Of a stretch of 64,000 nt of DNA, positions 2,272-62,097 are shown one piece after another. Positions within the stretch are counted from its first letter, which is position 1. Each line of letters starts with the position of its first letter. A model generated the notes under the pieces. That model was given only the letters and a program-made list of their open reading frames with translations. It searched no databases and was not told where the DNA came from. The position numbers and the translations under genes are program-made. The stretch spans positions 148,918-212,917 of the IMG/VR virus record IMGVR_UViG_3300022200_000019. One strand, given 5' to 3'.

Positions 2272-2431
2272 ATATCTCCTTCCTGACTTAATTTTATTTA
2301 AGGCCGCAATCAGATCAATATTACAGCTCAGTTATTGAAAATATTTTCGAGCTAAATAAATTTTTTGCACCCCTGAAAAACTTAAAATCACAAAATATAT
2401 TCCCAGTCCTGTATCGCGCATACATAGTGTT

Positions 2432-4966: not shown

Positions 4967-4991
4967 ATACCTCAAAACAACGAGTGTTGTT
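4963..4991 (+). promoter_or_regulatory. Late-type TAAATA element followed by hairpin AACAAC-GAGT-GTTGTT
   Basis: CTAAATAC at 4963-4970; 16-mer at 4976-4991 is identical to 8104-8119. Confidence 0.5.
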
Positions 4992-5059
4992 TGTTTCTTT
5001 GAATAAAAATTGCTGATAGCGATTGCTCTATGTATTAACATATGTCATAATAGGAAATC

Positions 5060-10669: not shown

Positions 10670-10690
10670 ACACAAATCTTACGTTGCATC

Positions 10691-10715
10691 AAAGCAGCCT
10701 TCGGGCTGCTTTTTT
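10691..10715 (+). terminator. Rho-independent terminator (UUCG loop)
   Basis: AAAGCAGCC-TTCG-GGCTGC-T6. Confidence 0.9.
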
Positions 10716-10726
10716 ATTGGTAAACC

Positions 10727-10770
10727 TTGTAACAAAAATTTAACAAAAGTGTAATAAAACGGTAACGGTT
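10727..10770 (+). promoter_or_regulatory. Pho-box-like array upstream of pstS
   Basis: Four 11-nt-phased units TTGTAACAAAA/ATTTAACAAAA/GTGTAATAAAA/CGGTAACGGTT. Confidence 0.65.
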
Positions 10771-10812
10771 TTATGTTTAAATAATGTTGATAAAACAAGG
10801 AGAAAAGAAGCA

Positions 10813-11769
10813 ATGAAAAGACTAATTGCGTTTTTTGCCGCACTGGCAATTAGCACAAGTGCTTTCGCAGGGGCGAAAGTAGACACACAGTTACCAAACT
10901 ATCATAAAGTTTCAGGTGTTAGTGGTAATTTAAACTCGGTGGGCTCAGATACATTAGCAAATTTAATGACTATGTGGGCTGAGGAATTTCGTAAAATATA
11001 TCCTAATGTTAACATTGGTATTCAAGCAGCGGGATCAAGCACTGCCCCGCCAGCACTAACTGAAGGAACTTCAAATGTTGGTCCAATGAGTCGTAAGATG
11101 AAGGATAAAGAACTACAAGCATTTGAGGCAAAGTATGGATATAAACCAACTGCTATTCCTGTTGCTATTGATGCGTTAGCAGTATTTGTTAACAAGGACA
11201 ATCCTATTAAAGGATTAACGATTGCTGAAGTTGACGCAATCTTCTCAAGCACAAGAAAGTGCGGTGCTAAACAAGACGCAATTAAATGGGGCGATGTAGG
11301 GTTAACTGGCTCCTGGACAAATCGCACAATTCAATTGTATGGTCGTAATTCTGTATCTGGCACCTACGGCTACTTTAAGAAAAAAGCACTTTGTAAAGGG
11401 GATTACAAAAATGATGTAAATGAACAACCAGGTTCAGCATCTGTAGTACAAAGTGTCACAGGTAGTATAAATGGCATTGGTTACTCAGGTATGGGTTACA
11501 AGACTTCTGGTGTAAAAACTGTTCCATTAAGCAAGAAAGGCGGTCCATACGTGGACGCAACACCTGAAAATGCATTAAATGGTTCATACCCACTGGCACG
11601 TTTTTTATACATTTATGTAAACAAGGCTCCTAATAAGCCGTTAGATCCAATGACATACGAATTTATTCGTATGGTTCTATCCAAGCAAGGACAAACAGTT
11701 GTAGTCAAAGATGGCTATGTTCCGTTACCTGCTGATATGGCTGAGAAATTATTGAAAACTGTTCAATGA
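10813..11769 (+). CDS. pstS: Phosphate ABC transporter substrate-binding protein
   Basis: Signal peptide; [38 protein letters not shown]. Confidence 0.95.
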
Positions 11770-11795
11770 TAACTATCTAGACTGCAACAAAAATT

Positions 11796-11821
11796 AAAGC
11801 AGCCTTCGGGCTGCTTTTTTT
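11796..11821 (+). terminator. Rho-independent terminator (UUCG loop), identical to 10691-10715
   Basis: AAAGCAGCC-TTCG-GGCTGC-T7. Confidence 0.9.
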
Positions 11822-11828
11822 ATAAATA
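11821..11828 (+). promoter_or_regulatory. T4-type late promoter
   Basis: TATAAATA, 5 nt before ATG 11834. Confidence 0.75.
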
Positions 11829-11833
11829 GTATT

Positions 11834-12394
11834 ATGGATAAAGATTTTTTCAAAGACGATAAGGCATATTGGCAGATTGCTGATGAAGTTAAAGGCATTT
11901 ATCTGAGTGATGGCTCAATGGCAAGTTTAATTGACTTTGAGCGTGTATTAGATGAAGTAGACATCTACGCTTTTGCTAACTGGGAAGATGGCGAACTTGT
12001 TAAAGGCCCAGACATCGGACGTTATAAAGTAACTTGTACTTTTATGTGGCCAGAGCGTATGATGCCTGATCCACGTGGTGCTAAACGTTTATTACCGTTT
12101 GACTGCGATGTATCGTTTTTGAAAACTGTTCTACAAGTTCCTGCTAAAGTTAAATCGTATGATGACTTTAAGCCCGGTACTAAAAAACCAAAAATGATTG
12201 ACATGCCAGTATGGCTTGTTGAAATCACTATGCCAAAGGATCTAATGTCAGATATTCGCACTGGTTCAATTGAACTAGAAGGTCAGGATATTGATCTAGA
12301 AGATCTGGACGCAGCATACGAACAAGACTTAGATCAACAAGAAACTCAAGACATCGAAACACAAGAAGAAGCAGACGAAGCATTTGCAGGTTAA
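11834..12394 (+). CDS. Hypothetical phage protein (acidic C-terminus)
   Basis: 186-aa ORF behind a late promoter; no recognisable family. Confidence 0.7.
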   Translation: MDKDFFKDDKAYWQIADEVKGIYLSDGSMASLIDFERVLDEVDIYAFANWEDGELVKGPDIGRYKVTCTFMWPERMMPDPRGAKRLLPFDCDVSFLKTVLQVPAKVKSYDDFKPGTKKPKMIDMPVWLVEITMPKDLMSDIRTGSIELEGQDIDLEDLDAAYEQDLDQQETQDIETQEEADEAFAG

Positions 12395-12395
12395 T

Positions 12396-12938
12396 ATGAA
12401 TAACGAACAACTTAATGAAGGACTAGAATTTAAAGATCTAGAAGGCATTGTAAAGCCTACTGTGTTTATTGATGAGTTTGCTAGTAAAATGGGCTCAGAT
12501 GATGAAGTAAGTGTAGTTAGTTTTTATGTTCGTAACAACCGAGCAGCAAACGATCTAGTTAATTGGTTTGAAAAAGGCTATGACTTTGTGCTTGATGCAG
12601 ATCGCAGTCCAGGCGAAGTTCGACCAAATCGTTATCTAGTCTATGTCGAGATGAAACGCCGCAACACATTACCAGAATGGATTCAAGAATTACTATATGA
12701 TTTAAATACACTAACCGAACACGAATCGGAAAATTCTTGGACCGTGGGATACAAAGGTGAAGAATTTCCGTTTACTGTAGAAGATATACGCAGTCGTGTT
12801 ATTCTAAGTCCAGTCAAGTACAGAGAGGCAAAAGAAGCAGGGCTAAACGAAATGCGCATTGCTGCTGGACTAAAAACCAAATCAACTCGCAATAACGATT
12901 CAGATATCAAAAATTTTGTTGCACTTGCCGGTCTTTAA
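12396..12938 (+). CDS. Hypothetical phage protein
   Basis: ATG 12396 follows the previous stop; contains LNE sites and ends MRIAAGL..FVALAGL. Confidence 0.7.
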   Translation: MNNEQLNEGLEFKDLEGIVKPTVFIDEFASKMGSDDEVSVVSFYVRNNRAANDLVNWFEKGYDFVLDADRSPGEVRPNRYLVYVEMKRRNTLPEWIQELLYDLNTLTEHESENSWTVGYKGEEFPFTVEDIRSRVILSPVKYREAKEAGLNEMRIAAGLKTKSTRNNDSDIKNFVALAGL

Positions 12939-12949
12939 TACATAATTAT

Positions 12950-13753
12950 GTGAAAAAATATAACAGATTAATTTCTTTTGGAGATAGTTTTGTCTGGGGC
13001 AGTGAGTTATCAGATTGTTTGACCGCTTCTCCAAAAGAAATTGTGAATAATCCAGAAAAATTCCCCAACGAATTAAAATTCATTCAAGATCGAAAAATTG
13101 GACCTTGTTCTGAAGTAAACATCAACGGCGAAATTAGCTCGTTATTTGCAGGATATAGTCTTAGTACTTGGCCTGCACTGTTAGCCACATACCTAAATCT
13201 AGAATATAGATGTGTGGCATATCCTGGAATTAGTAACCAAACTATTATTCGCAAATTAGTAAAATTTCTTCCAGAAATAAATTCTACAGATTTAGTTGTC
13301 ATTGACTGGACTTTTATAGATAGATGGGACTATGTTGATATTAACGAACCCCGTATCGAATATCAATGGAAAACATTGCGTCCAACATCAGATAAAAAAA
13401 CAAAAATTGAAAAATTTTATTTTGACGCAGTTCAAAGCGAACTCTGGAATAAATGGGAATCATTAAGAGCCATCATGCTGGTAGTACATTTGCTTAGATC
13501 GAGAGACATCGATTTTATCATGACCTCAGAAGATACACTGATACTTGATGAAAACTACCATACTCCTTCATATATAAGGAACGCACAAACTGAAATTAAA
13601 AATCATATAAACTGGTTCGAAGACAATGGGTTTTATCATTGGTCGATAAATCAAGGATTTCTTCGAGGTAAAGAAAATGATCATCCATTAGAAGATGCAC
13701 ACCAAGCAGCATTTGAATACATAATAGAAAATCAATGGCATTTAGAATTCTAA
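12950..13753 (+). CDS. SGNH/GDSL-like hydrolase
   Basis: FGDSFVWG, YPGISN, DHPLEDAH; AT-rich. Confidence 0.55.
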   Translation: MKKYNRLISFGDSFVWGSELSDCLTASPKEIVNNPEKFPNELKFIQDRKIGPCSEVNINGEISSLFAGYSLSTWPALLATYLNLEYRCVAYPGISNQTIIRKLVKFLPEINSTDLVVIDWTFIDRWDYVDINEPRIEYQWKTLRPTSDKKTKIEKFYFDAVQSELWNKWESLRAIMLVVHLLRSRDIDFIMTSEDTLILDENYHTPSYIRNAQTEIKNHINWFEDNGFYHWSINQGFLRGKENDHPLEDAHQAAFEYIIENQWHLEF

Positions 13754-14919: not shown

Positions 14920-15273
14920 ATGTTAAAATTAGTCAAAACGCCAAAGAAAAAGAAGCCAACAGATTGTACATTTGAAAAGCCAGTTGACAATCAAAAAACA
15001 GCAGTTAAAATGTTAATGTGCTGTAACAGTAATAACAGAGAATATGTAATTGGCCCAGATGTAGGTTTAGATTTAAATGTATTGGTAACAAAAACAAAAC
15101 CAAATTATTATTTCAATCCGGCTATAGTTGATAATGGTGTGCAATATCAAGATTACTTAGGTAACACAATGCACACAGATACAATAACAGAAGCAATGCA
15201 AGAAGCATTAACAAGACTTGCAGGAACTAGAAGAACCAGGAAAAAAACGGATGCAAATCAATCCAGAAATTGA
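14920..15273 (+). CDS. Degenerate peptide-deformylase-like protein
   Basis: GPDVG..VLV..YFNPAI echo PDF motifs, but HExxH is replaced by QEALT. Confidence 0.35.
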   Translation: MLKLVKTPKKKKPTDCTFEKPVDNQKTAVKMLMCCNSNNREYVIGPDVGLDLNVLVTKTKPNYYFNPAIVDNGVQYQDYLGNTMHTDTITEAMQEALTRLAGTRRTRKKTDANQSRN

Positions 15274-17536
15274 ACAAATCACAGATTATGCAATTACTAT
15301 TGCAAAGAAAAAAGAACATCATTACGTGTTAATCGAACATTTATTGCTTAGTTTAATACGCTTTGAACCATTTAATAACGTACTAGTAAAGTATGGTGTT
15401 GAAGTTGATTTATTAGATCAAGAACTAGACTACTATCTTGACAGTTTAGTAAATCTTACAAACAAAGACTACGATGGACATCCAAAACGCACAAATGGTC
15501 TAGAGCGTGTGTTTAACCGTGCCGGTACACAAGTATTGTTTACAGGCCGTCGTTATATTACTACTGTTGATTTGTATCTTAGTATTACTTCTGAAACCAA
15601 CAGTCATGCACAATATTTTCTGTTAAAATACGGAGTCGAAAAAGAAGCATTTACTTCGTTCTGGAATGAAAATTACAAACAAGGCAAAGTTACTCTTAAC
15701 GACGATCAAATTAAAGAAGTACTTGAGGAGCATTGCACTAACTTAAATGCACTTGCTCGTGAAGGAGATCTAGAACCGCTTATTGGTCGTTCTGCAGAAT
15801 TACAAGATGCAATTGAAATTCTTGCTAAAAAGTTCAAGTCTAATGTATTGATGATCGGCGATCCAGGTGTTGGTAAAACTGCTATTGTAGAAGGGCTTGC
15901 ACAAAAGATCGAAAATAGCGATGTACCAGAATTTCTTAAAGACCATGAAATCTGGAGTTTGGAAGTTGGTTCATTGCTTGCTGGATCTAAGTATCGCGGC
16001 GAGTTTGAAGAAAAATTTAAAGATGTTATTAAAGCACTAGAAGCAACCGATAATGCTATTTTGTTTATTGACGAAGCACACACTATGCACGGTGCTGGTG
16101 CTGGATCAAATTCAAGTCTGGACATGGCCAACATGCTCAAGCCGGCAATCACCAAAGGAAAACTAAAAGTAATTGCTTCCACTACCTGGGAAGAATACTA
16201 CGAGACTTTTGAAAAAGATCGTGCCATGATGCGTCGATTCTATAATCTTTCAATCGATGAACCAGATCACGATACTACAATTAAGATTCTTCAAGGACTC
16301 AGCGAACGATTAGAAGAATATCACGATGTTGAAATTGATTCTGCTGCTATTACTACCGCAGTTGACTTAGGAACACGCTATATTCACGATCGTAAGAATC
16401 CAGACAAGTCAATTGATTTGCTTGACGCTGCTTGTGCTAAACAACGTGCCAAAGATAACTCAGGTGTAATCATTACTGCCGATTTAATTTACGCAGAAGC
16501 AAATAAATTAACCGGAATTCCTCAAGAACGCTTAAAAAATGAGGATTGTGATAAGGTTCGTAACCTTGAATCACGTGTTAAGGAACGATTATACGGACAA
16601 GACGAAGTCGTTGATACCGTACTGAAGCGTATTAACGTTTCATTTGCTGGACTTAATTCTGATAATAAACCTGTTGCTAGTTTCTTGTTCTTGGGCCCAA
16701 CTGGCACAGGTAAAACTGAACTTGCTAAACTGCTAAGTGAAAACTTGGATATGGAATTGTTACGTTATGATATGAGTGAGTATCAAGAAAAACACACAGT
16801 ATCAACACTTATTGGCGCACCACCGGGTTATGTTGGGTATGAAGATTCTAACTTAGGCGGCGGTAAGTTAATTAACGATTTGTCTAAAGATCCTTTTAGT
16901 ATTATTTTGTTTGACGAAATTGAAAAAGCGCATCCAGATGTAAGCAATGTGTTGTTATCAATGCTCGACGAAGGTAAAATTACATCAAGTTCGGGCAAAA
17001 CCGTAAACTGCACTAATGCTATTATTATTCTTACATCTAACTTAGGTGCTCGTGATAATGAAAACAATAATATCGGTTTTGGCACTGATCTAGAGCGCAC
17101 TGGTTCTGAAGATAAAGCACTCAAAGAATACTTTAAACCAGAACTACGTAATCGCTTAGATGCTATTGTTAAATTTAACAAACTAGATACACTAAGTATT
17201 AAGAAGATTGTTAATAAATTCTTAAATCAACTCAAAAAGAATTTGTCTAAGAAAGGTATCGCAATTAATGTCACCGAGCCAGTTGTTGAATATCTAGCAG
17301 AAGTTGGATATGACAAGAAGATGGGCGCACGTCCGCTGGCACGTAAAATTGACGAACTATTAAAAGTTCCGCTAAGTGAAAAAATTCTGTTTGAAAATTT
17401 GCGTGATACTGACATTAACATTCGTTTAACCACAGAAAATACCATAGAATTTGTAAATAAAAATAGCGGCGGTCAAGAAGCTTCTGTGAACAAAGATGGA
17501 CTCATTGTACTGGACCAATTCAAACCTAAAGCATAA
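15251..17536 (+). CDS. clpA: ClpA-type AAA+ unfoldase
   Basis: N-domain EHLLLSL; GDPGVGKT, FIDEAH; second module GPTGTGKT, DEIEKAH, MGARPL; start MQINPE at 15251. Confidence 0.9.
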   Translation: MQINPEIEQITDYAITIAKKKEHHYVLIEHLLLSLIRFEPFNNVLVKYGVEVDLLDQELDYYLDSLVNLTNKDYDGHPKRTNGLERVFNRAGTQVLFTGRRYITTVDLYLSITSETNSHAQYFLLKYGVEKEAFTSFWNENYKQGKVTLNDDQIKEVLEEHCTNLNALAREGDLEPLIGRSAELQDAIEILAKKFKSNVLMIGDPGVGKTAIVEGLAQKIENSDVPEFLKDHEIWSLEVGSLLAGSKYRGEFEEKFKDVIKALEATDNAILFIDEAHTMHGAGAGSNSSLDMANMLKPAITKGKLKVIASTTWEEYYETFEKDRAMMRRFYNLSIDEPDHDTTIKILQGLSERLEEYHDVEIDSAAITTAVDLGTRYIHDRKNPDKSIDLLDAACAKQRAKDNSGVIITADLIYAEANKLTGIPQERLKNEDCDKVRNLESRVKERLYGQDEVVDTVLKRINVSFAGLNSDNKPVASFLFLGPTGTGKTELAKLLSENLDMELLRYDMSEYQEKHTVSTLIGAPPGYVGYEDSNLGGGKLINDLSKDPFSIILFDEIEKAHPDVSNVLLSMLDEGKITSSSGKTVNCTNAIIILTSNLGARDNENNNIGFGTDLERTGSEDKALKEYFKPELRNRLDAIVKFNKLDTLSIKKIVNKFLNQLKKNLSKKGIAINVTEPVVEYLAEVGYDKKMGARPLARKIDELLKVPLSEKILFENLRDTDINIRLTTENTIEFVNKNSGGQEASVNKDGLIVLDQFKPKA

Positions 17537-31249: not shown

Positions 31250-31277
31250 ATTATACACAATGCTAATCTAATGTCAA
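31250..31277 (-). promoter_or_regulatory. sigma70 promoter of the inverted cassette
   Basis: Minus strand TTGACA-N16-TATAAT. Confidence 0.75.
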
Positions 31278-51204: not shown

Positions 51205-51932
51205 TGCGAAAATTAATAATTGCAGGAAGTTCTTGGTCAGCTGGCACTTGGAAATTTGAGGAGCCAAACATCTATGCGCTGGATGAACCAGGTCTACAAT
51301 TACTATCAGAAAAATACAACGTAATTAACCTCAGTCGCGGCAGATCAAGTAACTGGCAATCTCTAAACACAATTATAAATTATTTTAACCATATCAGTGA
51401 CGAGTTGTTCGATGACACAGATGTTTTACTAGGTCAAACAGATATGTTCCTAGACAAAATGAGCAATTTGTTTGATGTTGACTATTCTGATTTATACAAA
51501 AGGGCTGTGGATTTTGAGAATTTTTACTTGTCTGCGGCAGAATTATTTTATTACAAATTGGATGCTATTTCCAAAACTATTAAAAAACCAATCCATATCA
51601 TCGGAGAATCATCTGATGTAGATGTTAATTTGTTGCATTCAATTACAGATAGAGTAAACGTAATATGTAGTAGTTGGGTAAAACTATTTAAAACAGATCA
51701 TCATGAATCGTTGATTCCGTTGGTAATAAATAAAAATTTTCTTCCAACAGCAAAAAAGAACCAACGACTTGATATTGCCATGCAAGGTACTGAGTATTCA
51801 GACTTAAATTTTAAAGAATTTATGAAATTACAAGAATCTGAATATATGGGAAATTTTATCGGTGATTTTCATCCAACGTCAAGTGGACACGACTTAATGT
51901 CCAGAAAAATTTTGTCTTATTTCGATGTTTGA
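51204..51932 (+). CDS. SGNH/GDSL-like hydrolase
   Basis: IAGSSWSAG, NLSRGRSSN, DFHPTSSGH. Confidence 0.55.
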   Translation: MRKLIIAGSSWSAGTWKFEEPNIYALDEPGLQLLSEKYNVINLSRGRSSNWQSLNTIINYFNHISDELFDDTDVLLGQTDMFLDKMSNLFDVDYSDLYKRAVDFENFYLSAAELFYYKLDAISKTIKKPIHIIGESSDVDVNLLHSITDRVNVICSSWVKLFKTDHHESLIPLVINKNFLPTAKKNQRLDIAMQGTEYSDLNFKEFMKLQESEYMGNFIGDFHPTSSGHDLMSRKILSYFDV

Positions 51933-52536
51933 CACAATACTTAAATTTGAAAACGTACTGGCTGAATACACAAATGCTCCGTATGCAGTTATGACTGACT
52001 GCTGCACACATGCAATTGAGTTATGCTTACGATACCAACAAAGTACGGAGCATCTAGATCACGTAGAGTTTACTGCATACACATACCTAAGTGTTCCAAT
52101 GACCATGCATAAGCTCGGAATTAACTATGACCTGCATGATGAATACTGGATCGGCGAATATCCAATTCATGGTACACAAATTTGGGACAGTGCCAGACGT
52201 TTAGAACGCAATATGTACCGCACAGGCACCATGCAGTGTTTGAGTTTTGGTTATTCTAAACCCATTGAAATTGGTCACGGCGGTGCTATACTGTTAGACA
52301 ACGAAGCAGCGTACAATAAACTAATTCGCATGCGCTATGATGGCCGCGACCTAGATATTAGTCCATGGTCGGCGCAGGTAATGTTTGAAGTTGGTTATCA
52401 TTATAGACCAACAGTAGAAGATGCTGAGCGTGGACTAGAATTACTAGAAAAATATAAAAACAAAAACAACACAAATCCTGTATATGTACAATATCCAGAC
52501 TGTAGATCTATTACTATAAATAAAAATGTTACATAA
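51925..52536 (+). CDS. Short DegT/DnrJ-type PLP aminotransferase
   Basis: DCCTHAIELCL, WDSA, SFGYSKP..GGAIL, RMRYDGR, GYHY. Confidence 0.75.
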   Translation: MFDTILKFENVLAEYTNAPYAVMTDCCTHAIELCLRYQQSTEHLDHVEFTAYTYLSVPMTMHKLGINYDLHDEYWIGEYPIHGTQIWDSARRLERNMYRTGTMQCLSFGYSKPIEIGHGGAILLDNEAAYNKLIRMRYDGRDLDISPWSAQVMFEVGYHYRPTVEDAERGLELLEKYKNKNNTNPVYVQYPDCRSITINKNVT

Positions 52537-52550
52537 CGGTAACAACCTGA

Positions 52551-52579
52551 TTGACAACAACGTGTTAATCTTGTATAAT
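52551..52579 (+). promoter_or_regulatory. Consensus sigma70 promoter of folE-queD
   Basis: TTGACA-N17-TATAAT. Confidence 0.85.
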
Positions 52580-52614
52580 ATCAATATTAAATCCGTGTAA
52601 GGAAGGGGTATAAA

Positions 52615-53295
52615 ATGAGTTTTAATAAAACAAAAACCGATCCTGTTCTGGGTCGTGAAGTTCATGAATGGTTAGTTAAATGCGGGGTCGAAACACCTGT
52701 TGAAGATATGGGCATCGATCGCAAAGACAAAATCGAAATCATTGAAAGACATTTTGCTGAAATTATGCGAACCATGGGGTTGGATCTAACTGATGACAGT
52801 CTGATGGAAACGCCCAAACGTGTCGCGAAAATGTATGTCAACGAAATATTTTGGGGTTTGGACTATGAAGCATTTCCGAAGTGTACTACTGTAGATAACA
52901 AAATGTCATATGATGAAATGGTTATCGAAACTGGTATTAACGTACAGAGCAACTGTGAACACCATTTTGTGGTGATTGATGGTCGAGCAACTGTTGCGTA
53001 TATTCCAGACAAGGTTGTGCTTGGGCTGAGTAAAATGAATCGCATCGTAGAATATTTCAGCAAACGTCCACAAATTCAGGAACGTTTAACTGAGCAAGTT
53101 TATCATGCACTGCAATACATCCTGGGAACAGACAACGTCGCTGTACTAATCGACGCACAACACTATTGCGTCAAGAGTCGTGGCGTTGAGGATGTAGGTT
53201 CTAGTACCATTACCAGCAAACTAGGTGGTGTATTCAAATCAGACCCAAGTGCTCGCGCAGAGTTCTTGGCAATTGCTCGTGATAATTGCAAATAA
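52615..53295 (+). CDS. folE: GTP cyclohydrolase I
   Basis: ETPKRVAKMY, SNCEHHF, GLSKMNR, RPQIQERLT, HYCVKSRG. Confidence 0.95.
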   Translation: MSFNKTKTDPVLGREVHEWLVKCGVETPVEDMGIDRKDKIEIIERHFAEIMRTMGLDLTDDSLMETPKRVAKMYVNEIFWGLDYEAFPKCTTVDNKMSYDEMVIETGINVQSNCEHHFVVIDGRATVAYIPDKVVLGLSKMNRIVEYFSKRPQIQERLTEQVYHALQYILGTDNVAVLIDAQHYCVKSRGVEDVGSSTITSKLGGVFKSDPSARAEFLAIARDNCK

Positions 53296-53305
53296 GGAGA
53301 ATAAT

Positions 53306-53893
53306 ATGGGCGTTAAGGTAAAATCAACGAAAGTATATAGATACTTGCCTTGTGGTCACGCACAGTTCTTTGATCTGGAACCAGATGGTAGTCCGGGAGA
53401 GTGTGCTAGCGTACACGGATATGATCGTTCAGTAGAACTCACATTTGCTGGTGACATTGACGACATGGGATGGATTGTTCCATTTGGTGAACTCAGTGCC
53501 GTGAAAAAGTTTATTGAATATTACTTTGATCACGTAACTGTGTTACCAGCAAACGATCCACGCTTGGATCAAATTACATCAGAAATGAAACAGCCTGGTG
53601 GTATTCTTGGTACTGTACGTATCCTACCAAGCGGTGTATCAATGGAAATGAGTTCACTATTCATTTGGGAATGGGTTAACCATTATATCTTTGATATCAC
53701 AGATGGTCGTTGCTATGTAGAAGGTGTGCGTGTATACGAACACGATCGCAATGACGCAATGATTGAAGTGGATCGCGAAACTGCTATCAAAGATGCAAGT
53801 AAGAAGATTGCGGCAGGTGAAGAAATCCTTCCACTCATCGACGAATGGTATTGGGAAGCACCCAAAGACGCAGTAGCAAGGATTGAAGGGTGA
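53306..53893 (+). CDS. queD: 6-carboxytetrahydropterin synthase
   Basis: CGHAQ..C..VHGYDR, VPFGEL, YFDH, VYEHDRN; AGGAG SD before ATG 53306. Confidence 0.85.
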   Translation: MGVKVKSTKVYRYLPCGHAQFFDLEPDGSPGECASVHGYDRSVELTFAGDIDDMGWIVPFGELSAVKKFIEYYFDHVTVLPANDPRLDQITSEMKQPGGILGTVRILPSGVSMEMSSLFIWEWVNHYIFDITDGRCYVEGVRVYEHDRNDAMIEVDRETAIKDASKKIAAGEEILPLIDEWYWEAPKDAVARIEG

Positions 53894-54222
53894 AGTTAGG
53901 TGGTTATTTTGATGTAGGCGGCACTGTTGTAAAACAGGATGACCGCTATATTGTTAAAGATAATACAGAACTAAACAACTTAGTTCTTAGTTCTACAAGA
54001 CTTAATCCAAACAAAAGTACTTCTGGACATAAACATGAAGGTCAAGAAGAAGTATATATGTTTATTACTGGTAGCGGCGAAATGGAATTAGACGACGAAA
54101 AGTTTTCTGTCACTGCTGGAGATATTGTTACAATAAAAGATGGAGTATTTCATCGTGTCCACGCTGGGCAGTATGGTTGTTATTTTATTTGTGTATTTGA
54201 TGGTTCAAGTAAACAACGATGA
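53890..54222 (+). CDS. Cupin-domain protein
   Basis: GHKHEGQEEVYMF..G.G, GDIV.IKDGVFHRV. Confidence 0.85.
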   Translation: MKLGGYFDVGGTVVKQDDRYIVKDNTELNNLVLSSTRLNPNKSTSGHKHEGQEEVYMFITGSGEMELDDEKFSVTAGDIVTIKDGVFHRVHAGQYGCYFICVFDGSSKQR

Positions 54223-54371
54223 AATGGCGGGTTTGGTGTAGGACTTTGGGGGCTAAAATCTCAGAGGACAAAAAGGAAGCAGACTATGCGTGTCTGTTCA
54301 GGACGATTTATACTGGTATAATGTTTGTTACCTGCTTCTTTATTATTGCTGGAGTCCTACACCAATGGTAA
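54219..54371 (+). CDS. Small membrane protein (50 aa, not in ORF track)
   Basis: MKWRVWCRTLGAK..EADYA..RT..FIIAGVLHQW; ATGA overlap. Confidence 0.6.
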   Translation: MKWRVWCRTLGAKISEDKKEADYACLFRTIYTGIMFVTCFFIIAGVLHQW

Positions 54372-54493
54372 GAATATTAATTCTTGGTTCTGCGATTTTT
54401 CTAAGTGGGTGTACTGGGTTTACGGTTTGCTGGCAGGATTGTCAACAAATTGTGCCAGTAGAACCAACCCCTAAATTGGTAATAGAACCGTAA
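54365..54493 (+). CDS. Small lipoprotein (42 aa)
   Basis: MVRILILGSAIFLSGC lipobox. Confidence 0.55.
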   Translation: MVRILILGSAIFLSGCTGFTVCWQDCQQIVPVEPTPKLVIEP

Positions 54494-54524
54494 GTTATTG
54501 ATTTTACAGTCTAACTTTTTTACC

Positions 54525-54561
54525 AAAAGCCGCTTGACACAGCGGCTTTTTTATGTATAAT
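54525..54561 (+). promoter_or_regulatory. Terminator hairpin overlapping a sigma70 promoter
   Basis: AAAAGCCGCT-TGACAC-AGCGGCTTTT; TTGACA 54534-54539, N16, TATAAT 54556-54561. Confidence 0.75.
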
Positions 54562-54609
54562 ATACAACGTAACTAACACTTTTAACCCATCCACAACGGA
54601 GACACTAGG

Positions 54610-57600
54610 ATGGACTTTACAAAAAGTAAAATTGCTATCGCTGTTGCTACTGCTGCTACCCTCACTGGGTGTGGTGGAGGTGGTGGCGGTCCGCAAACAC
54701 GCCCAAGTCCAATTATCGAATGGGGCAACGGCGTATACGATCCTTGGTTGTTAACTTCATCAACAGACACTACAGTTAACGACACCACCGAAGTCGACTG
54801 TCGCAATGACAACTACGAGCGTAATGTTTGGTGGGAAAAGATCATCGATGGTGTTCGTACAGGCATCAAAGGCGATTTAATTCGCGTCGAAACTAAAACT
54901 GAGGAAGTGTGTGTAAACACTACTGTTTCCCGTTATGAGGATGTTGAGACTAGCGAAAGTACAGTTACTCGCGGCACAACAACTGTTGAAACAACGTATA
55001 CCGATACTACAAGCGTTACCACTGATGTTAGTGGTAACACGGTTACAGAAGTGTGGCGCACATATACAGACACAACTACTACGCCTGTAACTACAACCAC
55101 AGTAACTACCACCACACGCACAACTTATTATAGCAACGGTACAAGTTCAAGCGAAGTAATCGATTCACAAACAACCCAGGAGACAAGCAATGATGTTACC
55201 AGTTCCGCCAGAGAAGCTGAACTCGTTAGCAGAACTGTTACTGCAAATCTTATTAGCAGCACACTAAGTTCCGTAGACGAAACCACAACCACTAACGGTA
55301 CGCCAACATCTGTTACAACTTATACAGATGAAACTCGTACCTTAGAGGATGCAAACGGTAGTACAGTTACAGAAGTGTGGCGTGTATATACTACAACTGT
55401 TACCACTCCTGTAACTACTACCGTAACTACAACTGTAACACGCATTGATACATATTCTGATGGTAGAACTATTCCAGAAACTGTAAGTGTTACACCAGTT
55501 TCTTCAACTGCTAATACAACATCTACTTCTACCACAGAAGAATTGTTGTCTAGTACTACAACACCTAATGTTGTAAGCACATCAACAAGTAGTGCCGACT
55601 CAGTTACTACATCAACTGGTACTGCTACAACAGAAACAACATATGTTGATGATGTGCGCACCAGTTTGGACGCTAACGGTAGTACTATAACTGAGACTTG
55701 GCGAGTATATACGGACACCACAACCACTCCAGTAACAACTACAACGGTCACTACGATTACTCGCACTACTGTTTATACCGACGGTACATCCGTTACTGAA
55801 CCTGTTAGTGTTACAAGTGCAGATTCTACAGAAAATACAGTAACTACTTCTACTCGCGAAGAATTACAATCACGTACAGTAACACCAAATGTTGCTAGTA
55901 CTGCTGATTCATCCAGCGATGTAACGTCAACCTCAACAGGGACTGCTACTGTTACTACAACCTATGTAGATGATGTACGTACTAGTTTGGATGCTAATGG
56001 CAGCACAGTTACAGAAACGTGGCGTGTACACACAGACACAACTACCACTCCAGTAACAACAACAGTTACAACTACAACAACTCGCACCACAACCTACACA
56101 GACAGTTCTACTACCTCCGAAGTGATTGATGTTAGCAGCACTGAATCGGTATCCAATACTGTTACAACTGCTACCCGAGAAGAACTATTATCTAGTGTAA
56201 CCACGCCAAATGTTGCTGGTACATCAGACTCAACCAGTTCGAGTACTACTACAACTGTAAGTGATCCTGTGTTTGATCGCACAGTTACTAACACAGACAC
56301 ACGTCCCGATGGTGTTTGGACGTATTATTACGATTATTGGATTACTACAACTACCGCAGTAACTACAGTAACTACTACTCGCACTACAACATATACAAAC
56401 GGCACAACTAATTCAGAAGTAATTGATGTTACAACAACCGAAAATGTTACAACTGCTGAAACATACACTACTCGTATTGTTGCTCCAGAAGCAACACCAG
56501 CAGATCCTTCGGCTCCGGAATCAAATGCGGGTACTGTAATAACACAGGACAATGCTCCTACATTGGATTATGATCCAGCTACATACAATTATTTGACGTA
56601 TTACAATAGCAATTATGTAGGTACTCCTACTGCTGTTGATAGTAACGATCCGGCAGATTTTGCTACAGTTGAAGCAGACAATGGCGCCGTGCTCGATGTA
56701 AACGCAAACTATGCGTATGCTCGAGGTTGGACTGGCAAAGGATCAACTGTAATGATTATGGATTCTGGTATTGACCAAGATCACCCGGAGTTTGAAGGTA
56801 AAATTAAGTATTTGTGGGATGCTGGTTACGATACTCCATATGAAGATACCAACGGGCATGGTACCCATGTTGCTGGTATTGTAGCAGCAAACAAAAACGA
56901 TACGGGTATGCATGGTATTGCATACGATGCTGATCTTGCTATTGCTCGTATCACTGATACTGGATATGGCAACTATTACGCTATTGCAGCACTAGATTGG
57001 GCTAAACAATACGAAGATATTGTTGCTGCTAACCTAAGTTCAAATACTGTATATCCAAGTTCGTATCGCAACGCAATGACTTATCAAGGTGATGGTGTTT
57101 ATACCAATAGCGATGCTACATATGGTGGGGTCAATTATTACAACCTAGAAAACCCAGCAACTTGGGCAGCAGCAATGCCAAGCGAACTGGTACTTACTGT
57201 GAGTGCTGGTAACCAAAGTTTAGGTTACGTTCAAAATCCTGCTACATTTGCTACCGCAGTAGACGCAGACGGTAACTTATTGTTTGACAGACGTATGCTT
57301 GTTGTTGGTAATTGGAACACAAGCACACAATCAGTAGACGGAGCAAAATCAGGACACGTTTGTAAGGATTATACTGTAACTTGTAATGACCCATACTTGA
57401 CCAAAGACTTTTATATTCTTGCTCCGGGTTCGCAAATTAATTCTACCTACCTAAATGGTGAATACAAGAGCATGAGTGGTACGTCAATGGCAGCACCTGT
57501 TGTGGCTGGTGCAGTTGCTATTGTACACCAACTGTGGCCGTATATGAAAGGATCAAATATTGCTCAATTGTTGTTGCAAACAGCGAATAAAACTATCACC

Positions 57601-58479
57601 GGATACGATGAAAATACTCACGGTCAGGGTTTGCTAGACTTAGATCAAGCAACACGCCCAGTAGGTGATTTGGGTATTTCGCTAACTGGACGTACAGGAT
57701 CCGCTGTACAGATTTCTGGTAGTATTAGTGTAAACGGTGTTAATGATGCTGTATTAAGCAATATCTCAGCAGTAGACGACTTTGATCGAGACTTTGTTGT
57801 TGACTTGTCAGGTGCTAAAGTTGATCGCAAGATTAGCGTAGAATATGCAGAGCGTCAAAAGGACAATAACAGTTGGGCAGCAAGTATGTCTAATATTTCA
57901 ACCCGTAAGTCTGAATCAGTTCGTTTTGGTGCATCAGAAAATGCCAAAAACTTTGCAATTGGTTATGATCATAAAATCTTTGACACCAATGCTACAGTAG
58001 GCGTAAGTTATACCAAATCTGATTCAAATCCATGGATTGATATGTCTGGCATGTGGGGCGAAGTTAAAGGTGCTCGCACTACAGAACTTAACTTGACATA
58101 TGACTTCTCAGACAATGCATGGGTACAAGCAGGCGCAATGGATACACGCACTGACTTTAGCTCAGGACTTGTTACAGACGTTAGCAACGTGCGTTCTGTG
58201 TACGCAGTAGCAGGATATGACGCAGATAACTATAGCGTGTATGCTGGTATTAAACCTTACGCAGTAGATGGTTCAGTTACTATGCGACTGCCAACAAGCG
58301 TTGATACCGCAGGCGTTATGCACTACGACACAGTAAGCAGCAACATTCGTTCAACGGTAGAAGGGTATGCAGGGTTTAAGCACAACTATACCAAGGACAA
58401 TCATTCTACTACGTTTGTAGGCGTTGTTGATTCGGATGGTGATAAGCATTTAGGATTTAACTATCGCTACAAGTTCTAA
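54610..58479 (+). CDS. Lipoprotein subtilisin (S8) autotransporter with Thr-rich repeat stalk
   Basis: LTGC lipobox; triad IMDSG / GHGTHVAG / GTSMAAP; beta-strand-rich C-terminus ending YRYKF. Confidence 0.85.
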   Translation: MDFTKSKIAIAVATAATLTGCGGGGGGPQTRPSPIIEWGNGVYDPWLLTSSTDTTVNDTTEVDCRNDNYERNVWWEKIIDGVRTGIKGDLIRVETKTEEVCVNTTVSRYEDVETSESTVTRGTTTVETTYTDTTSVTTDVSGNTVTEVWRTYTDTTTTPVTTTTVTTTTRTTYYSNGTSSSEVIDSQTTQETSNDVTSSAREAELVSRTVTANLISSTLSSVDETTTTNGTPTSVTTYTDETRTLEDANGSTVTEVWRVYTTTVTTPVTTTVTTTVTRIDTYSDGRTIPETVSVTPVSSTANTTSTSTTEELLSSTTTPNVVSTSTSSADSVTTSTGTATTETTYVDDVRTSLDANGSTITETWRVYTDTTTTPVTTTTVTTITRTTVYTDGTSVTEPVSVTSADSTENTVTTSTREELQSRTVTPNVASTADSSSDVTSTSTGTATVTTTYVDDVRTSLDANGSTVTETWRVHTDTTTTPVTTTVTTTTTRTTTYTDSSTTSEVIDVSSTESVSNTVTTATREELLSSVTTPNVAGTSDSTSSSTTTTVSDPVFDRTVTNTDTRPDGVWTYYYDYWITTTTAVTTVTTTRTTTYTNGTTNSEVIDVTTTENVTTAETYTTRIVAPEATPADPSAPESNAGTVITQDNAPTLDYDPATYNYLTYYNSNYVGTPTAVDSNDPADFATVEADNGAVLDVNANYAYARGWTGKGSTVMIMDSGIDQDHPEFEGKIKYLWDAGYDTPYEDTNGHGTHVAGIVAANKNDTGMHGIAYDADLAIARITDTGYGNYYAIAALDWAKQYEDIVAANLSSNTVYPSSYRNAMTYQGDGVYTNSDATYGGVNYYNLENPATWAAAMPSELVLTVSAGNQSLGYVQNPATFATAVDADGNLLFDRRMLVVGNWNTSTQSVDGAKSGHVCKDYTVTCNDPYLTKDFYILAPGSQINSTYLNGEYKSMSGTSMAAPVVAGAVAIVHQLWPYMKGSNIAQLLLQTANKTITGYDENTHGQGLLDLDQATRPVGDLGISLTGRTGSAVQISGSISVNGVNDAVLSNISAVDDFDRDFVVDLSGAKVDRKISVEYAERQKDNNSWAASMSNISTRKSESVRFGASENAKNFAIGYDHKIFDTNATVGVSYTKSDSNPWIDMSGMWGEVKGARTTELNLTYDFSDNAWVQAGAMDTRTDFSSGLVTDVSNVRSVYAVAGYDADNYSVYAGIKPYAVDGSVTMRLPTSVDTAGVMHYDTVSSNIRSTVEGYAGFKHNYTKDNHSTTFVGVVDSDGDKHLGFNYRYKF
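54960..56480 (+). repeat. Coding repeat, about 321-nt (107-aa) period, 4 copies plus a partial
   Basis: DDVRTSLDANG at 55648 and 55969 (321 nt apart); recurring TVTE(V/T)WR.YT.TTTTPVTT. Confidence 0.85.
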
Positions 58480-58500
58480 TGATCGCATAAATACTACATT

Positions 58501-58785
58501 ATGCGAGCAACAGAATTAATAAGACACGTTCTAGATTTAATTGACAATATTGAGGCAACAAAAGGCCCCGATGTTGCAGTTAGTGTTACTAACATCACAA
58601 AAGAAGAACCCGAACCCGAAGCAGAATACGCAAACGAACCCAACGAACAGTATGCTCCGGTTAGTGCTGTGACTACTGATATGGGCGGCGGACCTAATAA
58701 GCCTAAACATCCTGCGGACCTTAGAGGCGATTCTCAAAGTCTTTATCCTACCATGCAGTATGATCCATACCGAGGACTACGATAA
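58501..58785 (+). CDS. Small late protein with MRATELI leader
   Basis: ATAAATA at 58487-58493. Confidence 0.65.
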   Translation: MRATELIRHVLDLIDNIEATKGPDVAVSVTNITKEEPEPEAEYANEPNEQYAPVSAVTTDMGGGPNKPKHPADLRGDSQSLYPTMQYDPYRGLR

Positions 58786-59888
58786 TGGCTACGGTAACAG
58801 TACAAAGTTTATTAAACACGGCTGTTTATGATTCGTATACTAGTATTACACTTACAACCAAAACTGTAGCACAACTTAAAGCAGATATTCAAACTGCTAC
58901 CGGTGTCGATGTTGACTGGTTTGATCTTGTATTAAACGAAACTGTACTTGTTGAAGGTAACACACTTTCCGTAGAAGGCGTCCAAGACGGCGACGCATTG
59001 CGCACACATAACAAAATTGCTCGTTTGTCGGATCGTGAAACTAAACAAAAAGCAAAATTAGCACTTGCTGCGCTTGATAGAATTGCCAGTGGCAAGTCAG
59101 GTGAATATGACATCACAGAATTACCAACACAGTATCGTGGTGATGTTGCTGTAGACAATCCTAATACCGGAGGATTATTAGAAGGTCGTCCGTGGTCAAC
59201 TAGCGGTATTGAAGAAACAAACTTGGTTATGTACTTAGATGGTCTTATTACATCTAGCGGTACTACCGTATATGATCAATCACCATTGGGCAACAATGCC
59301 ACACTGGTTGGGCCAACACACGATTCTTCAAACGGTTACTTTACGTTTGACGGTTCAAATGATTATATTCGTTCGTCAGATTTTAATGGTACGGCTGTTT
59401 ACAGCCCAGATACTTTCTCAGCAGGTGCGTGGGTATACCCAACAGCAGCAGGTGTGGTTGTAAGTATTGCCGACGCTAACTCGCCAGCAGGAGCAAGTTA
59501 TCATTACAGTAGTTTAGAAATGGTTGAGTCTGGTGGCAATCCAGTTCCGTACTTTGGATTATGGAACGGCACTAGTATCACATCGGATTCTGGAACAGCA
59601 CTAAGTTACAACACTTGGTATCATATGGTAATAACCTATAATGGAACAACACTAAAAGGCTATATCAACGGCAGCGAAGTTGCCAGTGCCAGTGTTACAT
59701 ACGATAGTCCTGCTGATGATGCTACCGGAGCACAATACTTCTTGTTTGGTGCGTCGGATATTACAAATATGGGCGATGGCACATATTTTAATGGACGTAT
59801 GGGCGAGATTCGGTTGTATAGTGCCGCACTATCGCCAACCGAAGTTGCGGATAACTATAACTTTACTAAATCACGTTACGGATACTAA
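58785..59888 (+). CDS. Ubiquitin-like domain + linker + LamG/concanavalin-A lectin (probable virion protein)
   Basis: Residues 27-73 align ungapped to ubiquitin 22-68; C-terminal FTFDGSNDY, WYHMVITY, YINGS, FNGRMGEIRLY. Confidence 0.75.
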   Translation: MATVTVQSLLNTAVYDSYTSITLTTKTVAQLKADIQTATGVDVDWFDLVLNETVLVEGNTLSVEGVQDGDALRTHNKIARLSDRETKQKAKLALAALDRIASGKSGEYDITELPTQYRGDVAVDNPNTGGLLEGRPWSTSGIEETNLVMYLDGLITSSGTTVYDQSPLGNNATLVGPTHDSSNGYFTFDGSNDYIRSSDFNGTAVYSPDTFSAGAWVYPTAAGVVVSIADANSPAGASYHYSSLEMVESGGNPVPYFGLWNGTSITSDSGTALSYNTWYHMVITYNGTTLKGYINGSEVASASVTYDSPADDATGAQYFLFGASDITNMGDGTYFNGRMGEIRLYSAALSPTEVADNYNFTKSRYGY

Positions 59889-61771
59889 TGGGTAACTTAA
59901 ACGACAACTCAACCAGTTATGTTCACAGTTATGAACCAAACACCAATGACCTCACAATGGCAATGGACTACAATGACGCAGGCGAACCTGCTATCCGCGT
60001 TAAGTCATATATTGAAGGGGATATCACAATTGAAGGCGACGTTAACATACCCGGTTCTGTTGAAATCAGTAATGACATAGGAAATCCTATTCCAGTAAGT
60101 GGTACAATTACAGCATTACAAGGAACAGATCCTTGGACTGTAGATGGCACTGTTAATATTGGCAACGAAGTAAGCATCAACGACGGCGGCAATAGCATTA
60201 CTGTAGATGTCAACGGAAATGTAACTGTTGTTCAAGGAACAACGCCTTGGACTGTAGATGGAACTGTTAATATTGGCACTATGCCTAATGTAACACTTAA
60301 CCAACCAATCGCAGTTACAGACAACGGCAGTAGTCTAACAGTAGATGGAACTGTGGCAGTCAGCAACTTCCCTGCTACACAGACAGTAGATGGAACTGTG
60401 AATATTGGCAACGAAGTAGCAATCAATGATGGTGGCAACAGCATCACAGTTGATGGAACTGTGGGCATCACTGGCGATGTAAATGTAACACAAGGAACAA
60501 CGCCTTGGACCGTGAGCGGCACAGTTACCGTACAAGAAACAGGATTTAACAGCACAGGTAATATTTCTGGATCTAGTGATGCATTCGGTAGGTTGCGTAT
60601 ATCGCAGCCACTTACACTTTTTGATAGTAGTCACAGGTACAGAGACAACAACCTATTTGCAGAAAGCACCAGCGGCGGTGGCTCTAGTTCTTTTAACGCA
60701 AATGCTGGTCTGATTGAAATGGATGTAGGCACAGCCAGCGGCGATGAAGTGCTTCGCGAATCAACAAAGGTAATGAGTTATCAACCTGGTAAGTCGTTGT
60801 TGATTATGAGTACATTTGTTTTTAATGAAGCAAAAACAAATCTTAGACAGCGTGTGGGATATTTCGGTAGTAAAAATGGAATGTATCTTGAACTGGACGA
60901 TAATGATCTGTGTTTTGTAGAACGCAGCAGCGTTACTGGTAGTGTCACTGAAACTAAGATTCCGCAGAGCCAATGGAATGTTGATACCATGGACGGATCT
61001 GCCGGCGCTGGCAATGTTAGCGGCATTACTCTTGATATTACCAAGGCGCAGATATTATGGATGGATATTGAATGGCTAGGACTAGGAAGTTCAAGAATGG
61101 GTTTTGTAATCAACGGGCAGTTTGTGGTTGCTCATGTTTTCCATCATGCTAATCTAATAGACAGTACATATATTACTACTGCTAGTTTGCCATTGAGACA
61201 AGAAATAACCAACACCGGTACAACAACAAGTGCAAGTAAGTCAAAACAAGTTTGCTCAACTGTTATAAGTGAAGGCGGCTATGAACTGCGTGGGCTTCAA
61301 CAAGCCGTGGGTACTCCTATAGCAACACCTCGAGATTTAGCACTTGCAGATACATACTATCCAATCATATCTATTAGGTTGAAGACTAGCCCAGACAGAC
61401 TAGATGCTATCGTTATTATGACTGCAATGAGTCTAATCGGTACAAGTAACAACAGTAACTACAACTGGCGTGTAGTAGCCACTGGAACAACAACAGGCGG
61501 CTCATGGGTAAGTGCTGGCATAGACAGTGCAGTAGAATATAACATAACAGGCACCAGTCACAGCGGCGGGCGTATTCTCGCTAGTGGATGGTTTCAAGGA
61601 AGTAATCAAGGTAGTTCAGTTGTTGATATTTTGAAAGAAGCACTATTTAAGTTTCAACTAGAGCGTGATAGTTTTGTGCCTGAGCCATACGAGCTGACAC
61701 TGGTTGTTGCTACAGACAATGCAGGTTCTGATATGTACGCTACTATCGACTGGGAAGAAATCAGTCGATAA
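59888..61771 (+). CDS. Virion structural/fibre-like protein with TVDGTV repeats
   Basis: Repeated PWTVDGTVNIG and DGGNSITVD; globular C-terminus starting DAFGRLRIS. Confidence 0.65.
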   Translation: MGNLNDNSTSYVHSYEPNTNDLTMAMDYNDAGEPAIRVKSYIEGDITIEGDVNIPGSVEISNDIGNPIPVSGTITALQGTDPWTVDGTVNIGNEVSINDGGNSITVDVNGNVTVVQGTTPWTVDGTVNIGTMPNVTLNQPIAVTDNGSSLTVDGTVAVSNFPATQTVDGTVNIGNEVAINDGGNSITVDGTVGITGDVNVTQGTTPWTVSGTVTVQETGFNSTGNISGSSDAFGRLRISQPLTLFDSSHRYRDNNLFAESTSGGGSSSFNANAGLIEMDVGTASGDEVLRESTKVMSYQPGKSLLIMSTFVFNEAKTNLRQRVGYFGSKNGMYLELDDNDLCFVERSSVTGSVTETKIPQSQWNVDTMDGSAGAGNVSGITLDITKAQILWMDIEWLGLGSSRMGFVINGQFVVAHVFHHANLIDSTYITTASLPLRQEITNTGTTTSASKSKQVCSTVISEGGYELRGLQQAVGTPIATPRDLALADTYYPIISIRLKTSPDRLDAIVIMTAMSLIGTSNNSNYNWRVVATGTTTGGSWVSAGIDSAVEYNITGTSHSGGRILASGWFQGSNQGSSVVDILKEALFKFQLERDSFVPEPYELTLVVATDNAGSDMYATIDWEEISR

Positions 61772-61773
61772 GA

Positions 61774-61803
61774 TTGACATAGAATACAAAAAGGTAGTAT
61801 AAT
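61774..61803 (+). promoter_or_regulatory. sigma70-type promoter
   Basis: TTGACA-N18-TATAAT. Confidence 0.6.
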
Positions 61804-62068: not shown

Positions 62069-62097
62069 TTGACACATAACTGTTAAAATGTTATAAT
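62069..62097 (+). promoter_or_regulatory. Consensus sigma70 promoter with extended -10
   Basis: TTGACA-N17 (ending TGT)-TATAAT. Confidence 0.85.

Follow-up and report, generated by a model that had tools for sequence, protein, structure and literature searches.

The stretch analyzed here, referred to below as the window, comprises 64,000 nucleotides (positions 148,918 to 212,917, the final 64 kb) of the 212,917-bp IMG/VR virus record IMGVR_UViG_3300022200_000019, whose completeness is estimated at 61% by CheckV. Within the window, an open reading frame (ORF) at positions 54610 to 58479 of the plus strand, open from its ATG for 1289 amino acids (aa), encodes a protein with a predicted lipoprotein signal peptide, a long Thr-rich repeat region, a subtilisin (peptidase S8) domain and, at its C terminus, a predicted 12-stranded outer-membrane beta-barrel. 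The gene is borne by an uncultured freshwater jumbo phage, and its product is probably, if by no means certainly, a protease displayed on the surface of the infected Gram-negative cell and anchored in its outer membrane by the barrel. More broadly, we tentatively propose that jumbo phages of aquatic Gram-negatives carry their own type-V-like module of linker plus 12-stranded barrel, with no counterpart in Pfam or among solved structures and with mostly viral members in public data, which would be fused to different passengers (subtilisin, FG-GAP propeller), expressed from host-type promoters and used to re-dress the surface of the infected cell, with lipidated long-spacer variants putting the protease on a Thr-rich tether of ca. 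500 residues. A preliminary description of the gene, made from the sequence alone, had read it as a phage-encoded lipoprotein subtilisin autotransporter on a repeat stalk. As detailed below, its individual elements were recovered, while the stalk has to be redrawn and the term autotransporter holds for the layout and not for the classical family.

The S8 domain (aa 709 to 1002; 56734 to 57615, plus strand, as for all features of the gene given below) matched PF00082 with 130.2 bits against a gathering cut-off of 21.8 (E value of 1.2e-37), and the general library scans otherwise returned a PHROG “protease” family. The catalytic triad, described earlier as intact, is present in canonical motifs: D718 in MDSGID (codon 56761 to 56763), H750 in HGTHVAG (56857 to 56859), and S959 in SGTSMAAP (57484 to 57486), together with the oxyanion residue N868 (57211 to 57213). 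All four residues and the Cys pair C918/C925 were invariant in a family alignment of 49 sequences, and the invariance of the Cys pair fits an oxidizing, exported location. The modeled fold of the domain resembled subtilisin E (Z score of 37.7) and the passenger of Ssp (PDB 8e7f; Z score of 34.8, 31% identity), the latter being also the second-best PDB sequence match (E value of 1e-24). A Pro/Asp-rich linker and a conserved pre-catalytic segment (aa 641 to 708; 56530 to 56733) precede the domain.

After the protease, a second linker (aa 1005 to 1098; 57622 to 57903), conserved and with invariant D1056, R1060, and W1089, leads into the predicted barrel (aa 1099 to 1289; 57904 to 58476). AlphaFold2 was run with the family alignment and gave a 600-aa model with a predicted local distance difference test score (pLDDT) of 91.8 and a predicted template modeling score of 0.81, while the last 285 aa alone were modeled with a pLDDT of 89.8. 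In both models a linker of ca. 95 residues, consisting of short strands and of helices of only 4 to 6 residues (DSSP), is followed by twelve long antiparallel strands. In most of these strands, hydrophobic and polar positions alternate throughout the family. The protein terminates in ...LGFNYRYKF, with an alternating pattern of hydrophobic/aromatic residues, and of 92 family members, 70 have F at the C-terminal position, 6 have W, and 2 have Y. Structure prediction thus bore out the barrel-like C terminus with terminal Phe that had been noticed from the sequence, with twelve strands modeled at a pLDDT of ca. 90.

An exhaustive structural comparison (VIA-align) returned exclusively outer-membrane barrels as matches of this domain, both porins and translocators: KdgM (Z score of 13.0), CymA (12.7), VhGalP (12.2), OmpG (11.8), the NalP translocator (11.4, over 192 residues), and NanC (11.0), as well as the further autotransporters AIDA-I (11.0, 192 residues), EstA (10.5), EspP (9.8, 202 residues), and BrkA (9.6). 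The longest structural alignments were those with autotransporter translocators; a Foldseek search of the PDB with the barrel model gave weak matches to outer-membrane proteins (E > 0.003). By sequence, residues 1005 to 1289 matched nothing in Pfam, NCBIfam, PHROGs, or the PDB, either singly or as a family profile (PDB, E ≤ 10), and PF03797 was found neither in aa 1010 to 1289 (E ≤ 10) nor in any of 49 family barrels (E ≤ 1). The models establish the C-terminal domain as a predicted 12-stranded outer-membrane barrel with a C-terminal signal of the type recognized by the beta-barrel assembly machinery (BAM); the fold itself is not proof of a translocator.

What speaks most strongly for export or display of the preceding sequence by the module is that unrelated passengers are joined to one C-terminal barrel, which is the autotransporter principle. 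When the ESM Atlas was searched by shape with the barrel model, the matches comprised the family of S8 proteins itself (91% viral) and a cluster of FG-GAP proteins (100% viral) that share the barrel at a template modeling score of 0.76. Such a fusion also occurs in a related phage contig (L004), where the gene just 3' of the S8 gene (10905 to 13292, plus strand) encodes a 795-aa FG-GAP protein whose last 299 residues aligned with the module profile at a probability of 100% (hhalign; E value of 8e-40, 32% identity). The alignment begins exactly at the conserved linker, and the protein ends in YEFKF. Since the linker and barrel recur in a related phage as a fusion to an FG-GAP protein, the pair (ca. 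285 aa) is, as judged from these alignments, a portable anchor or translocator. The FG-GAP protein adjoining the S8 gene in another contig (L087) is without the barrel.

At the other end of the protein, aa 1 to 21 (54610 to 54672) form a predicted lipoprotein signal peptide with a basic n-region (K5 and K7), a hydrophobic core, and the lipobox L-T-G-C at Cys21, followed by six Gly, in agreement with the lipobox of the preliminary description. With the LTGC motif and typical n- and h-regions, the protein would be a candidate for lipidation as in NalP and SphB1. Next come the Gly6 tether and a module containing C64 and C100 (together aa 22 to 115; 54673 to 54954); this two-Cys module (aa 28 to 115) occurs twice in a relative that is 80% identical (L002).

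The Thr-rich region (aa 116 to 640; 54955 to 56529) consists of five units of ca. 107 aa, starting at approximately aa 116, 224, 332, 439, and 540, so that the four or more repeats of 107 aa counted earlier amount to four units of 107 to 108 aa plus a degenerate fifth (ca. aa 540 to 640). The units are anchored by W149, W257, W364, and W471 (periods of 108, 107, and 107), Thr makes up 36% of the ca. 107-aa unit, and a hidden Markov model of the unit recovered five copies with E values of 1e-34 to 1e-42. Since the copies are only 50 to 69% identical as protein and 59 to 66% as DNA, the repeats are old and maintained and represent neither a recent duplication nor an assembly duplication. They had been described as a stalk; however, they lie N-terminal to the protease, on the side opposite to the barrel, and are a spacer between the lipid anchor and the enzyme instead of a stalk on the barrel. 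In L002, the relative with 80% identity, the gene is broken within the repeat region into two overlapping ORFs (1662 to 3011 and 2947 to 5721), owing either to a frameshift or to slippage of the assembly over the repeats.

The repeats had no match in Pfam, NCBIfam, or PHROGs and only weak low-complexity matches in a sequence profile search of the PDB, and a feature search of the ESM Atlas gave no usable match. A reading of the units as G5 domains (PF07501, of the SasG/Aap type) was rejected: none of 15 repeat units matched at E ≤ 10, nor did aa 100 to 700, and hhalign of the repeat profile with the N terminus of a G5-bearing relative gave a probability of 0.4%. A partial G5 match is present in the own N termini of some relatives.

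The gene is preceded by a perfect consensus sigma-70 promoter (TTGACA-16 nt-TATAAT, 54534 to 54561), and a Shine-Dalgarno sequence, GGAG, lies 8 nt 5' of the ATG (54598 to 54601). What had been called an early-type promoter is thus present as a host-type consensus promoter. A hairpin resembling an intrinsic terminator (54525 to 54550; 10-bp stem and T-run) closes the upstream unit and overlaps the −35 box. Perfect sites with spacers of 16 to 18 nt were found five times in the window, at 31250 to 31277 on the minus strand and at 52551 to 52579, 54534 to 54561, 61774 to 61803, and 62069 to 62097 on the plus strand. Five perfect promoters in 64 kb, against 0.18 expected from shuffled sequences, suggest that part of the phage genome relies heavily on the host sigma-70 holoenzyme. 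In addition, 33 of 80 relatives have a sigma-70 promoter matching 11 or 12 of 12 positions less than 200 nt upstream of the S8 gene, where the chance expectation is, by our own arithmetic, ca. 0.001 per locus.

That the gene belongs to the phage, as had been claimed, is clear from several data sets. Between 88 and 96% of the words sampled from the stretch were recovered in freshwater metagenomes of four different samples and studies, with partial recovery in estuary runs. Over positions 53500 to 59400, four runs showed even read depth and contigs bridging both ends of the gene, and an IMG/VR contig (L101) carries an identical copy. On these grounds host contamination, which flanking reads might have revealed, is excluded. 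The same gene was found at the same place in diverged phage contigs of up to 353 kb, and at least 160 IMG/VR contigs carry a relative, some of them 302 to 353 kb long. The DNA polymerase of the phage has 48 to 50% identity with its counterparts in two jumbo phages of 470 to 490 kb, Sinorhizobium phage Phosso and Agrobacterium phage Atu_ph07.

In all four runs some contigs diverge from the reference at ca. 54689, just past the poly-Gly codons, and in three of them (X1, X2, and X7) some rejoin it at ca. 58456, near the stop codon. This pattern points to a co-occurring strain with the same signal peptide and gene end and a divergent interior, perhaps the 72%-identical type of contigs L093 and L100.

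Used as a query, the protease plus barrel reached E ≤ 0.001 with 2,459 protein clusters out of 8,000 scored candidates; the best 120 were 42 to 80% identical, mostly over their full length. A collection of 50,697 phage records was far less informative: a near-identity DNA search with the gene gave no match, tblastn with the S8 domain and barrel matched the catalytic half alone (25 to 30% identity), no record covered ≥80% of the query, and none covered the barrel at BLAST sensitivity. No paralogous barrel was found elsewhere in the phage record, itself ca. 61% complete. Among 185,579 species-representative genomes, the alignment of S8 domain plus barrel yielded at least two clear cellular members. 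One lies in a Puniceispirillum metagenome-assembled genome (MAG) and is flanked by housekeeping genes; the other, in the isolate Pelagibacter sp. HIMB1746 (L007, 6519 to 10190), is a lipoprotein of 1223 aa with a lipobox and seven Gly, 32% identical through the barrel, and adjoins a phage-type integrase (10658 to 11686), so that the locus may be an island or a prophage remnant. The phylogeny against bacterial homologues that had been put forward as a check was informative only in part: in an unrooted tree of 73 members, four cell-context rows, the labels of two of which (L086 and L088) are themselves uncertain, were scattered among viral rows, and no direction of transfer can be claimed.

Lipid anchors are confined to a minority of this family. 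Of 176 unique complete members, 146 have an ordinary signal peptide without lipid anchor and 30 a lipobox pattern, ca. 27 of them convincing and 20 with poly-Gly after the Cys; most members combine the ordinary signal peptide with a short N-terminal region bearing one or zero Thr-rich units. The lipobox members are longer (median of 1182 aa versus 783 aa for the others), which indicates that lipid anchor and long spacer go together. Altogether, the subtilisin-barrel family is large, mostly phage-borne, conserved in synteny, and equipped with a portable barrel, and is not the product of a one-off capture. Our literature search found no paper linking jumbo phages with subtilisin or autotransporter genes, a comparative review of 224 genomes included.

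The arrangement of these elements suggests how the protein might work. Transcription by host RNA polymerase would start at the gene's own consensus sigma-70 promoter, probably at an early stage of infection, and the precursor would cross the inner membrane by Sec and be lipidated at Cys21 by the Lgt/LspA route. Guided by the aromatic C-terminal signal, BAM would insert the 12-stranded barrel into the outer membrane, with the linker of ca. 95 residues threading or plugging it as in type Va systems and the subtilisin domain reaching the cell surface, connected to the N-terminal lipid by the Thr-rich region of 500 residues. If the protease were then cut from the barrel as in NalP and SphB1, lipid and spacer would hold the enzyme on the cell with a long reach (PMC9289746). 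There it could cleave surface or envelope proteins of the infected cell. We infer lipidation, outer-membrane insertion, surface exposure, timing, and target alike from these features. As to the purpose, our favored guess is the destruction of receptors, by which other phages would be excluded and the progeny protected from adsorbing to debris; early phage lipoproteins acting as receptor inactivators provide the analogy. This specific role is doubtful, and nutrient release or other effects are equally conjectural. The same holds for the roles put forward in the preliminary description, which were the clipping of receptors used by competing phages, changes in grazing or adhesion, and the release of peptides.

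Several observations weigh against surface display. The residue at position +2 after Cys21 is Gly, by which the lipid would by default end up in the inner leaflet of the outer membrane and the passenger could stay periplasmic. The model has no long alpha-helix able to fill the barrel pore, and by sequence the barrel could be related neither to PF03797 nor to any chain in the PDB. As Z scores of 10 to 13 are also reached by the porins KdgM, CymA, and OmpG, the fold indicates an outer-membrane barrel and not specifically a translocator. As for expression and timing, the gene was absent from every RNA run screened, and no terminator was found separating it from the downstream virion-protein genes, so that a separate early unit is not clearly delimited. 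The main rival is a periplasm-facing enzyme, which barrel and lipid would tether to the inner face of the outer membrane and which would cut periplasmic or envelope-linking proteins, for example loosening the envelope for lysis or disabling uptake systems. The Gly at +2 and the lack of a modeled pore helix keep it under consideration, the former because sorting by the +2 residue through Lol, an established rule for enterobacteria, predicts the inner leaflet. A small conserved lipoprotein ORF directly 5' of the gene would also suit it, and the barrel is as similar to small porins as to translocators. We nevertheless regard it as unlikely. Long Thr-rich repeats are typical of surface proteins, the same module bears an FG-GAP propeller, typically an extracellular binding domain, and we know of no 12-stranded barrel with a large N-terminal periplasmic enzyme, whereas type Va proteins are built of an N-terminal passenger followed by a 12-stranded barrel at the C terminus (PMC9289746).

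Surface display has also to be weighed against release. Many subtilisin autotransporters are freed after export (PMC9289746), and the 146 of 176 family members without lipid anchor would agree with an enzyme exported through the barrel and cut free, to digest external protein for the infected cell or to act on grazers or competitors. However, in the protein studied here and ca. 27 relatives the lipobox is kept and coupled to a long spacer, which argues for retention, and a diffusible enzyme would probably bring little private benefit to a single infected planktonic cell; release seems to us quite improbable for this protein. A protease packaged in the virion or used in particle maturation might be suspected from the position of the gene, which heads a unit continuing, with no terminator found in between, into ORFs with PHROG virion structural labels. 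In most relatives, though, the flanks are genes for GTP cyclohydrolase, HIT, and PTPS and not structural genes, and the assembly of virions in the cytoplasm cannot be reconciled with a Sec/lipoprotein signal, a membrane barrel, and a conserved disulfide pair, making this a very remote prospect. Least of all do we credit host DNA mis-joined to the phage contig or a cellular gene miscalled as viral. A few relatives do lie among cellular genes (the Puniceispirillum MAG and, next to an integrase, Pelagibacter HIMB1746), and two further metagenome contexts are possibly cellular, but the even depth and bridging contigs at both junctions in four runs, the identical copy on L101, the conserved location in diverged contigs of up to 353 kb, and the flat GC content across the region all speak for the phage.

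In the window, genes are tightly packed on one strand, and the GC content is flat throughout the region of the subtilisin gene. GTP cyclohydrolase I and QueD/PTPS genes lie 5' of it, and two ORFs on its 3' side (58785 to 59888 and 59888 to 61771) match PHROG families labeled as virion structural proteins. A common neighborhood was recognized in 10 of the 12 metagenome or window contexts inspected, with genes for an epimerase, a short DegT-like protein, a B12-radical-SAM protein, GTP cyclohydrolase I, the S8 protein, HIT, PTPS, methyltransferases, and a phosphoribosyltransferase. The conserved block around the S8 gene (51925 to 54222 in the window; loci L003, L005, L087, and L089 to L092) also includes a UDP-glucose dehydrogenase, and its product may be a modified base or sugar. 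The gene order of the window deviates from this block, with PTPS upstream of the S8 gene, HIT missing downstream of it, and a cupin-like ORF at 53890 to 54222. A 110-aa ORF 5' of the subtilisin gene was considered as an i-spanin and ruled out, as it resembles a cupin.

Directly 5' of the subtilisin gene, a 42-aa ORF (54365 to 54493, plus strand) encodes a lipoprotein-like product with the lipobox LSGC, three Cys, and a Pro-rich tail ending in PKLVIEP. Its homologue in the related phage L002 (1429 to 1563) has the identical position and the same PKLVIEP tail; the product may act like an o-spanin or as a partner of the protease. A second protease of the phage, cytoplasmic, is encoded by a 772-aa ORF (15218 to 17536, plus strand) that matched the PHROG “ATP-dependent protease” (Lon-like AAA+) with an E value of 1e-234.

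The phage products known to change the host cell surface are for the most part small binders or modifiers of glycans. If displayed, a conserved outer-membrane protease, enzymatically intact by its sequence, would represent a different viral way of editing the host surface proteome. In freshwater and estuarine plankton, this could affect the exclusion of superinfecting phages, the loss of progeny to cell debris, aggregation, and grazing. The linker and barrel, compact (ca. 285 aa), passenger-portable, and unrelated in sequence to PF03797, are a candidate new scaffold for surface display and a test case for the reach of the autotransporter principle.

Among known systems, the closest phage precedents encode proteins exported to the outer membrane of the host, such as T5 Llp, an early lipoprotein that inactivates the phage receptor, lambda Lom and Bor, and Ag43 on the cryptic prophage CP4-44. 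Unlike the protein described here, none of these is a protease or a member of the same barrel family; they comprise small binding proteins, small barrels of 8 strands, and adhesin autotransporters of the classical kind. The literature also mentions a “prophage-encoded autotransporter.” The 12-stranded small porins KdgM, NanC, and VhGalP have the same strand number as the phage barrel and are among its best structural matches by Z score, but they are stand-alone proteins with an open pore, have neither an N-terminal enzyme nor the conserved linker, and are only 8 to 10% identical to it. Ssp, the PrtS-type subtilase autotransporter of Serratia marcescens (PDB 8e7f), has a passenger structurally close to the phage S8 domain, which is no closer to it (Z score of 34.8) than to free subtilisins (subtilisin E, 37.7); unlike the phage protein, it has no lipobox, and it has a beta-helical passenger stalk and a PF03797 barrel.

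The comparison with NalP of Neisseria meningitidis and SphB1 of Bordetella pertussis, surface proteases that process other surface proteins and are retained by a lipid (PMC9289746), is a reasonable description of how the phage protein might work, and had already been drawn in the preliminary description. Like them, it has an N-terminal lipoprotein signal, an S8A passenger, a C-terminal 12-stranded barrel, and an aromatic end. In the model it shows the type Va layout of an N-terminal passenger and a C-terminal 12-stranded barrel (PMC9289746), with a signal peptide in front and, in ...LGFNYRYKF, an aromatic beta-signal for BAM. The subtilisin-like autotransporters of Group 15 (NalP, SphB1, Ssp, and EprS) have an N-terminal protease subdomain, a beta-helix stalk of ca. 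200 aa, and then the barrel (PMC9289746); in the phage protein, however, the protease ends at ca. aa 1002 and the barrel linker begins at ca. aa 1005, while the long repeat region precedes the protease. In contrast to NalP and SphB1, its barrel falls outside PF03797, its model contains neither a long pore helix nor a beta-helix stalk of ca. 200 aa, ca. 620 residues including five Thr-rich repeats separate lipid from protease, and the gene belongs to a lytic-type jumbo phage and not to a pathogen chromosome; the NCBIfam model EprS scored 88 bits against a cut-off of 1700. We therefore class the phage protein outside the NalP/SphB1 family, as a probable type-V-like surface protease on a new, mainly viral barrel family that would resemble NalP and SphB1 in its way of working.

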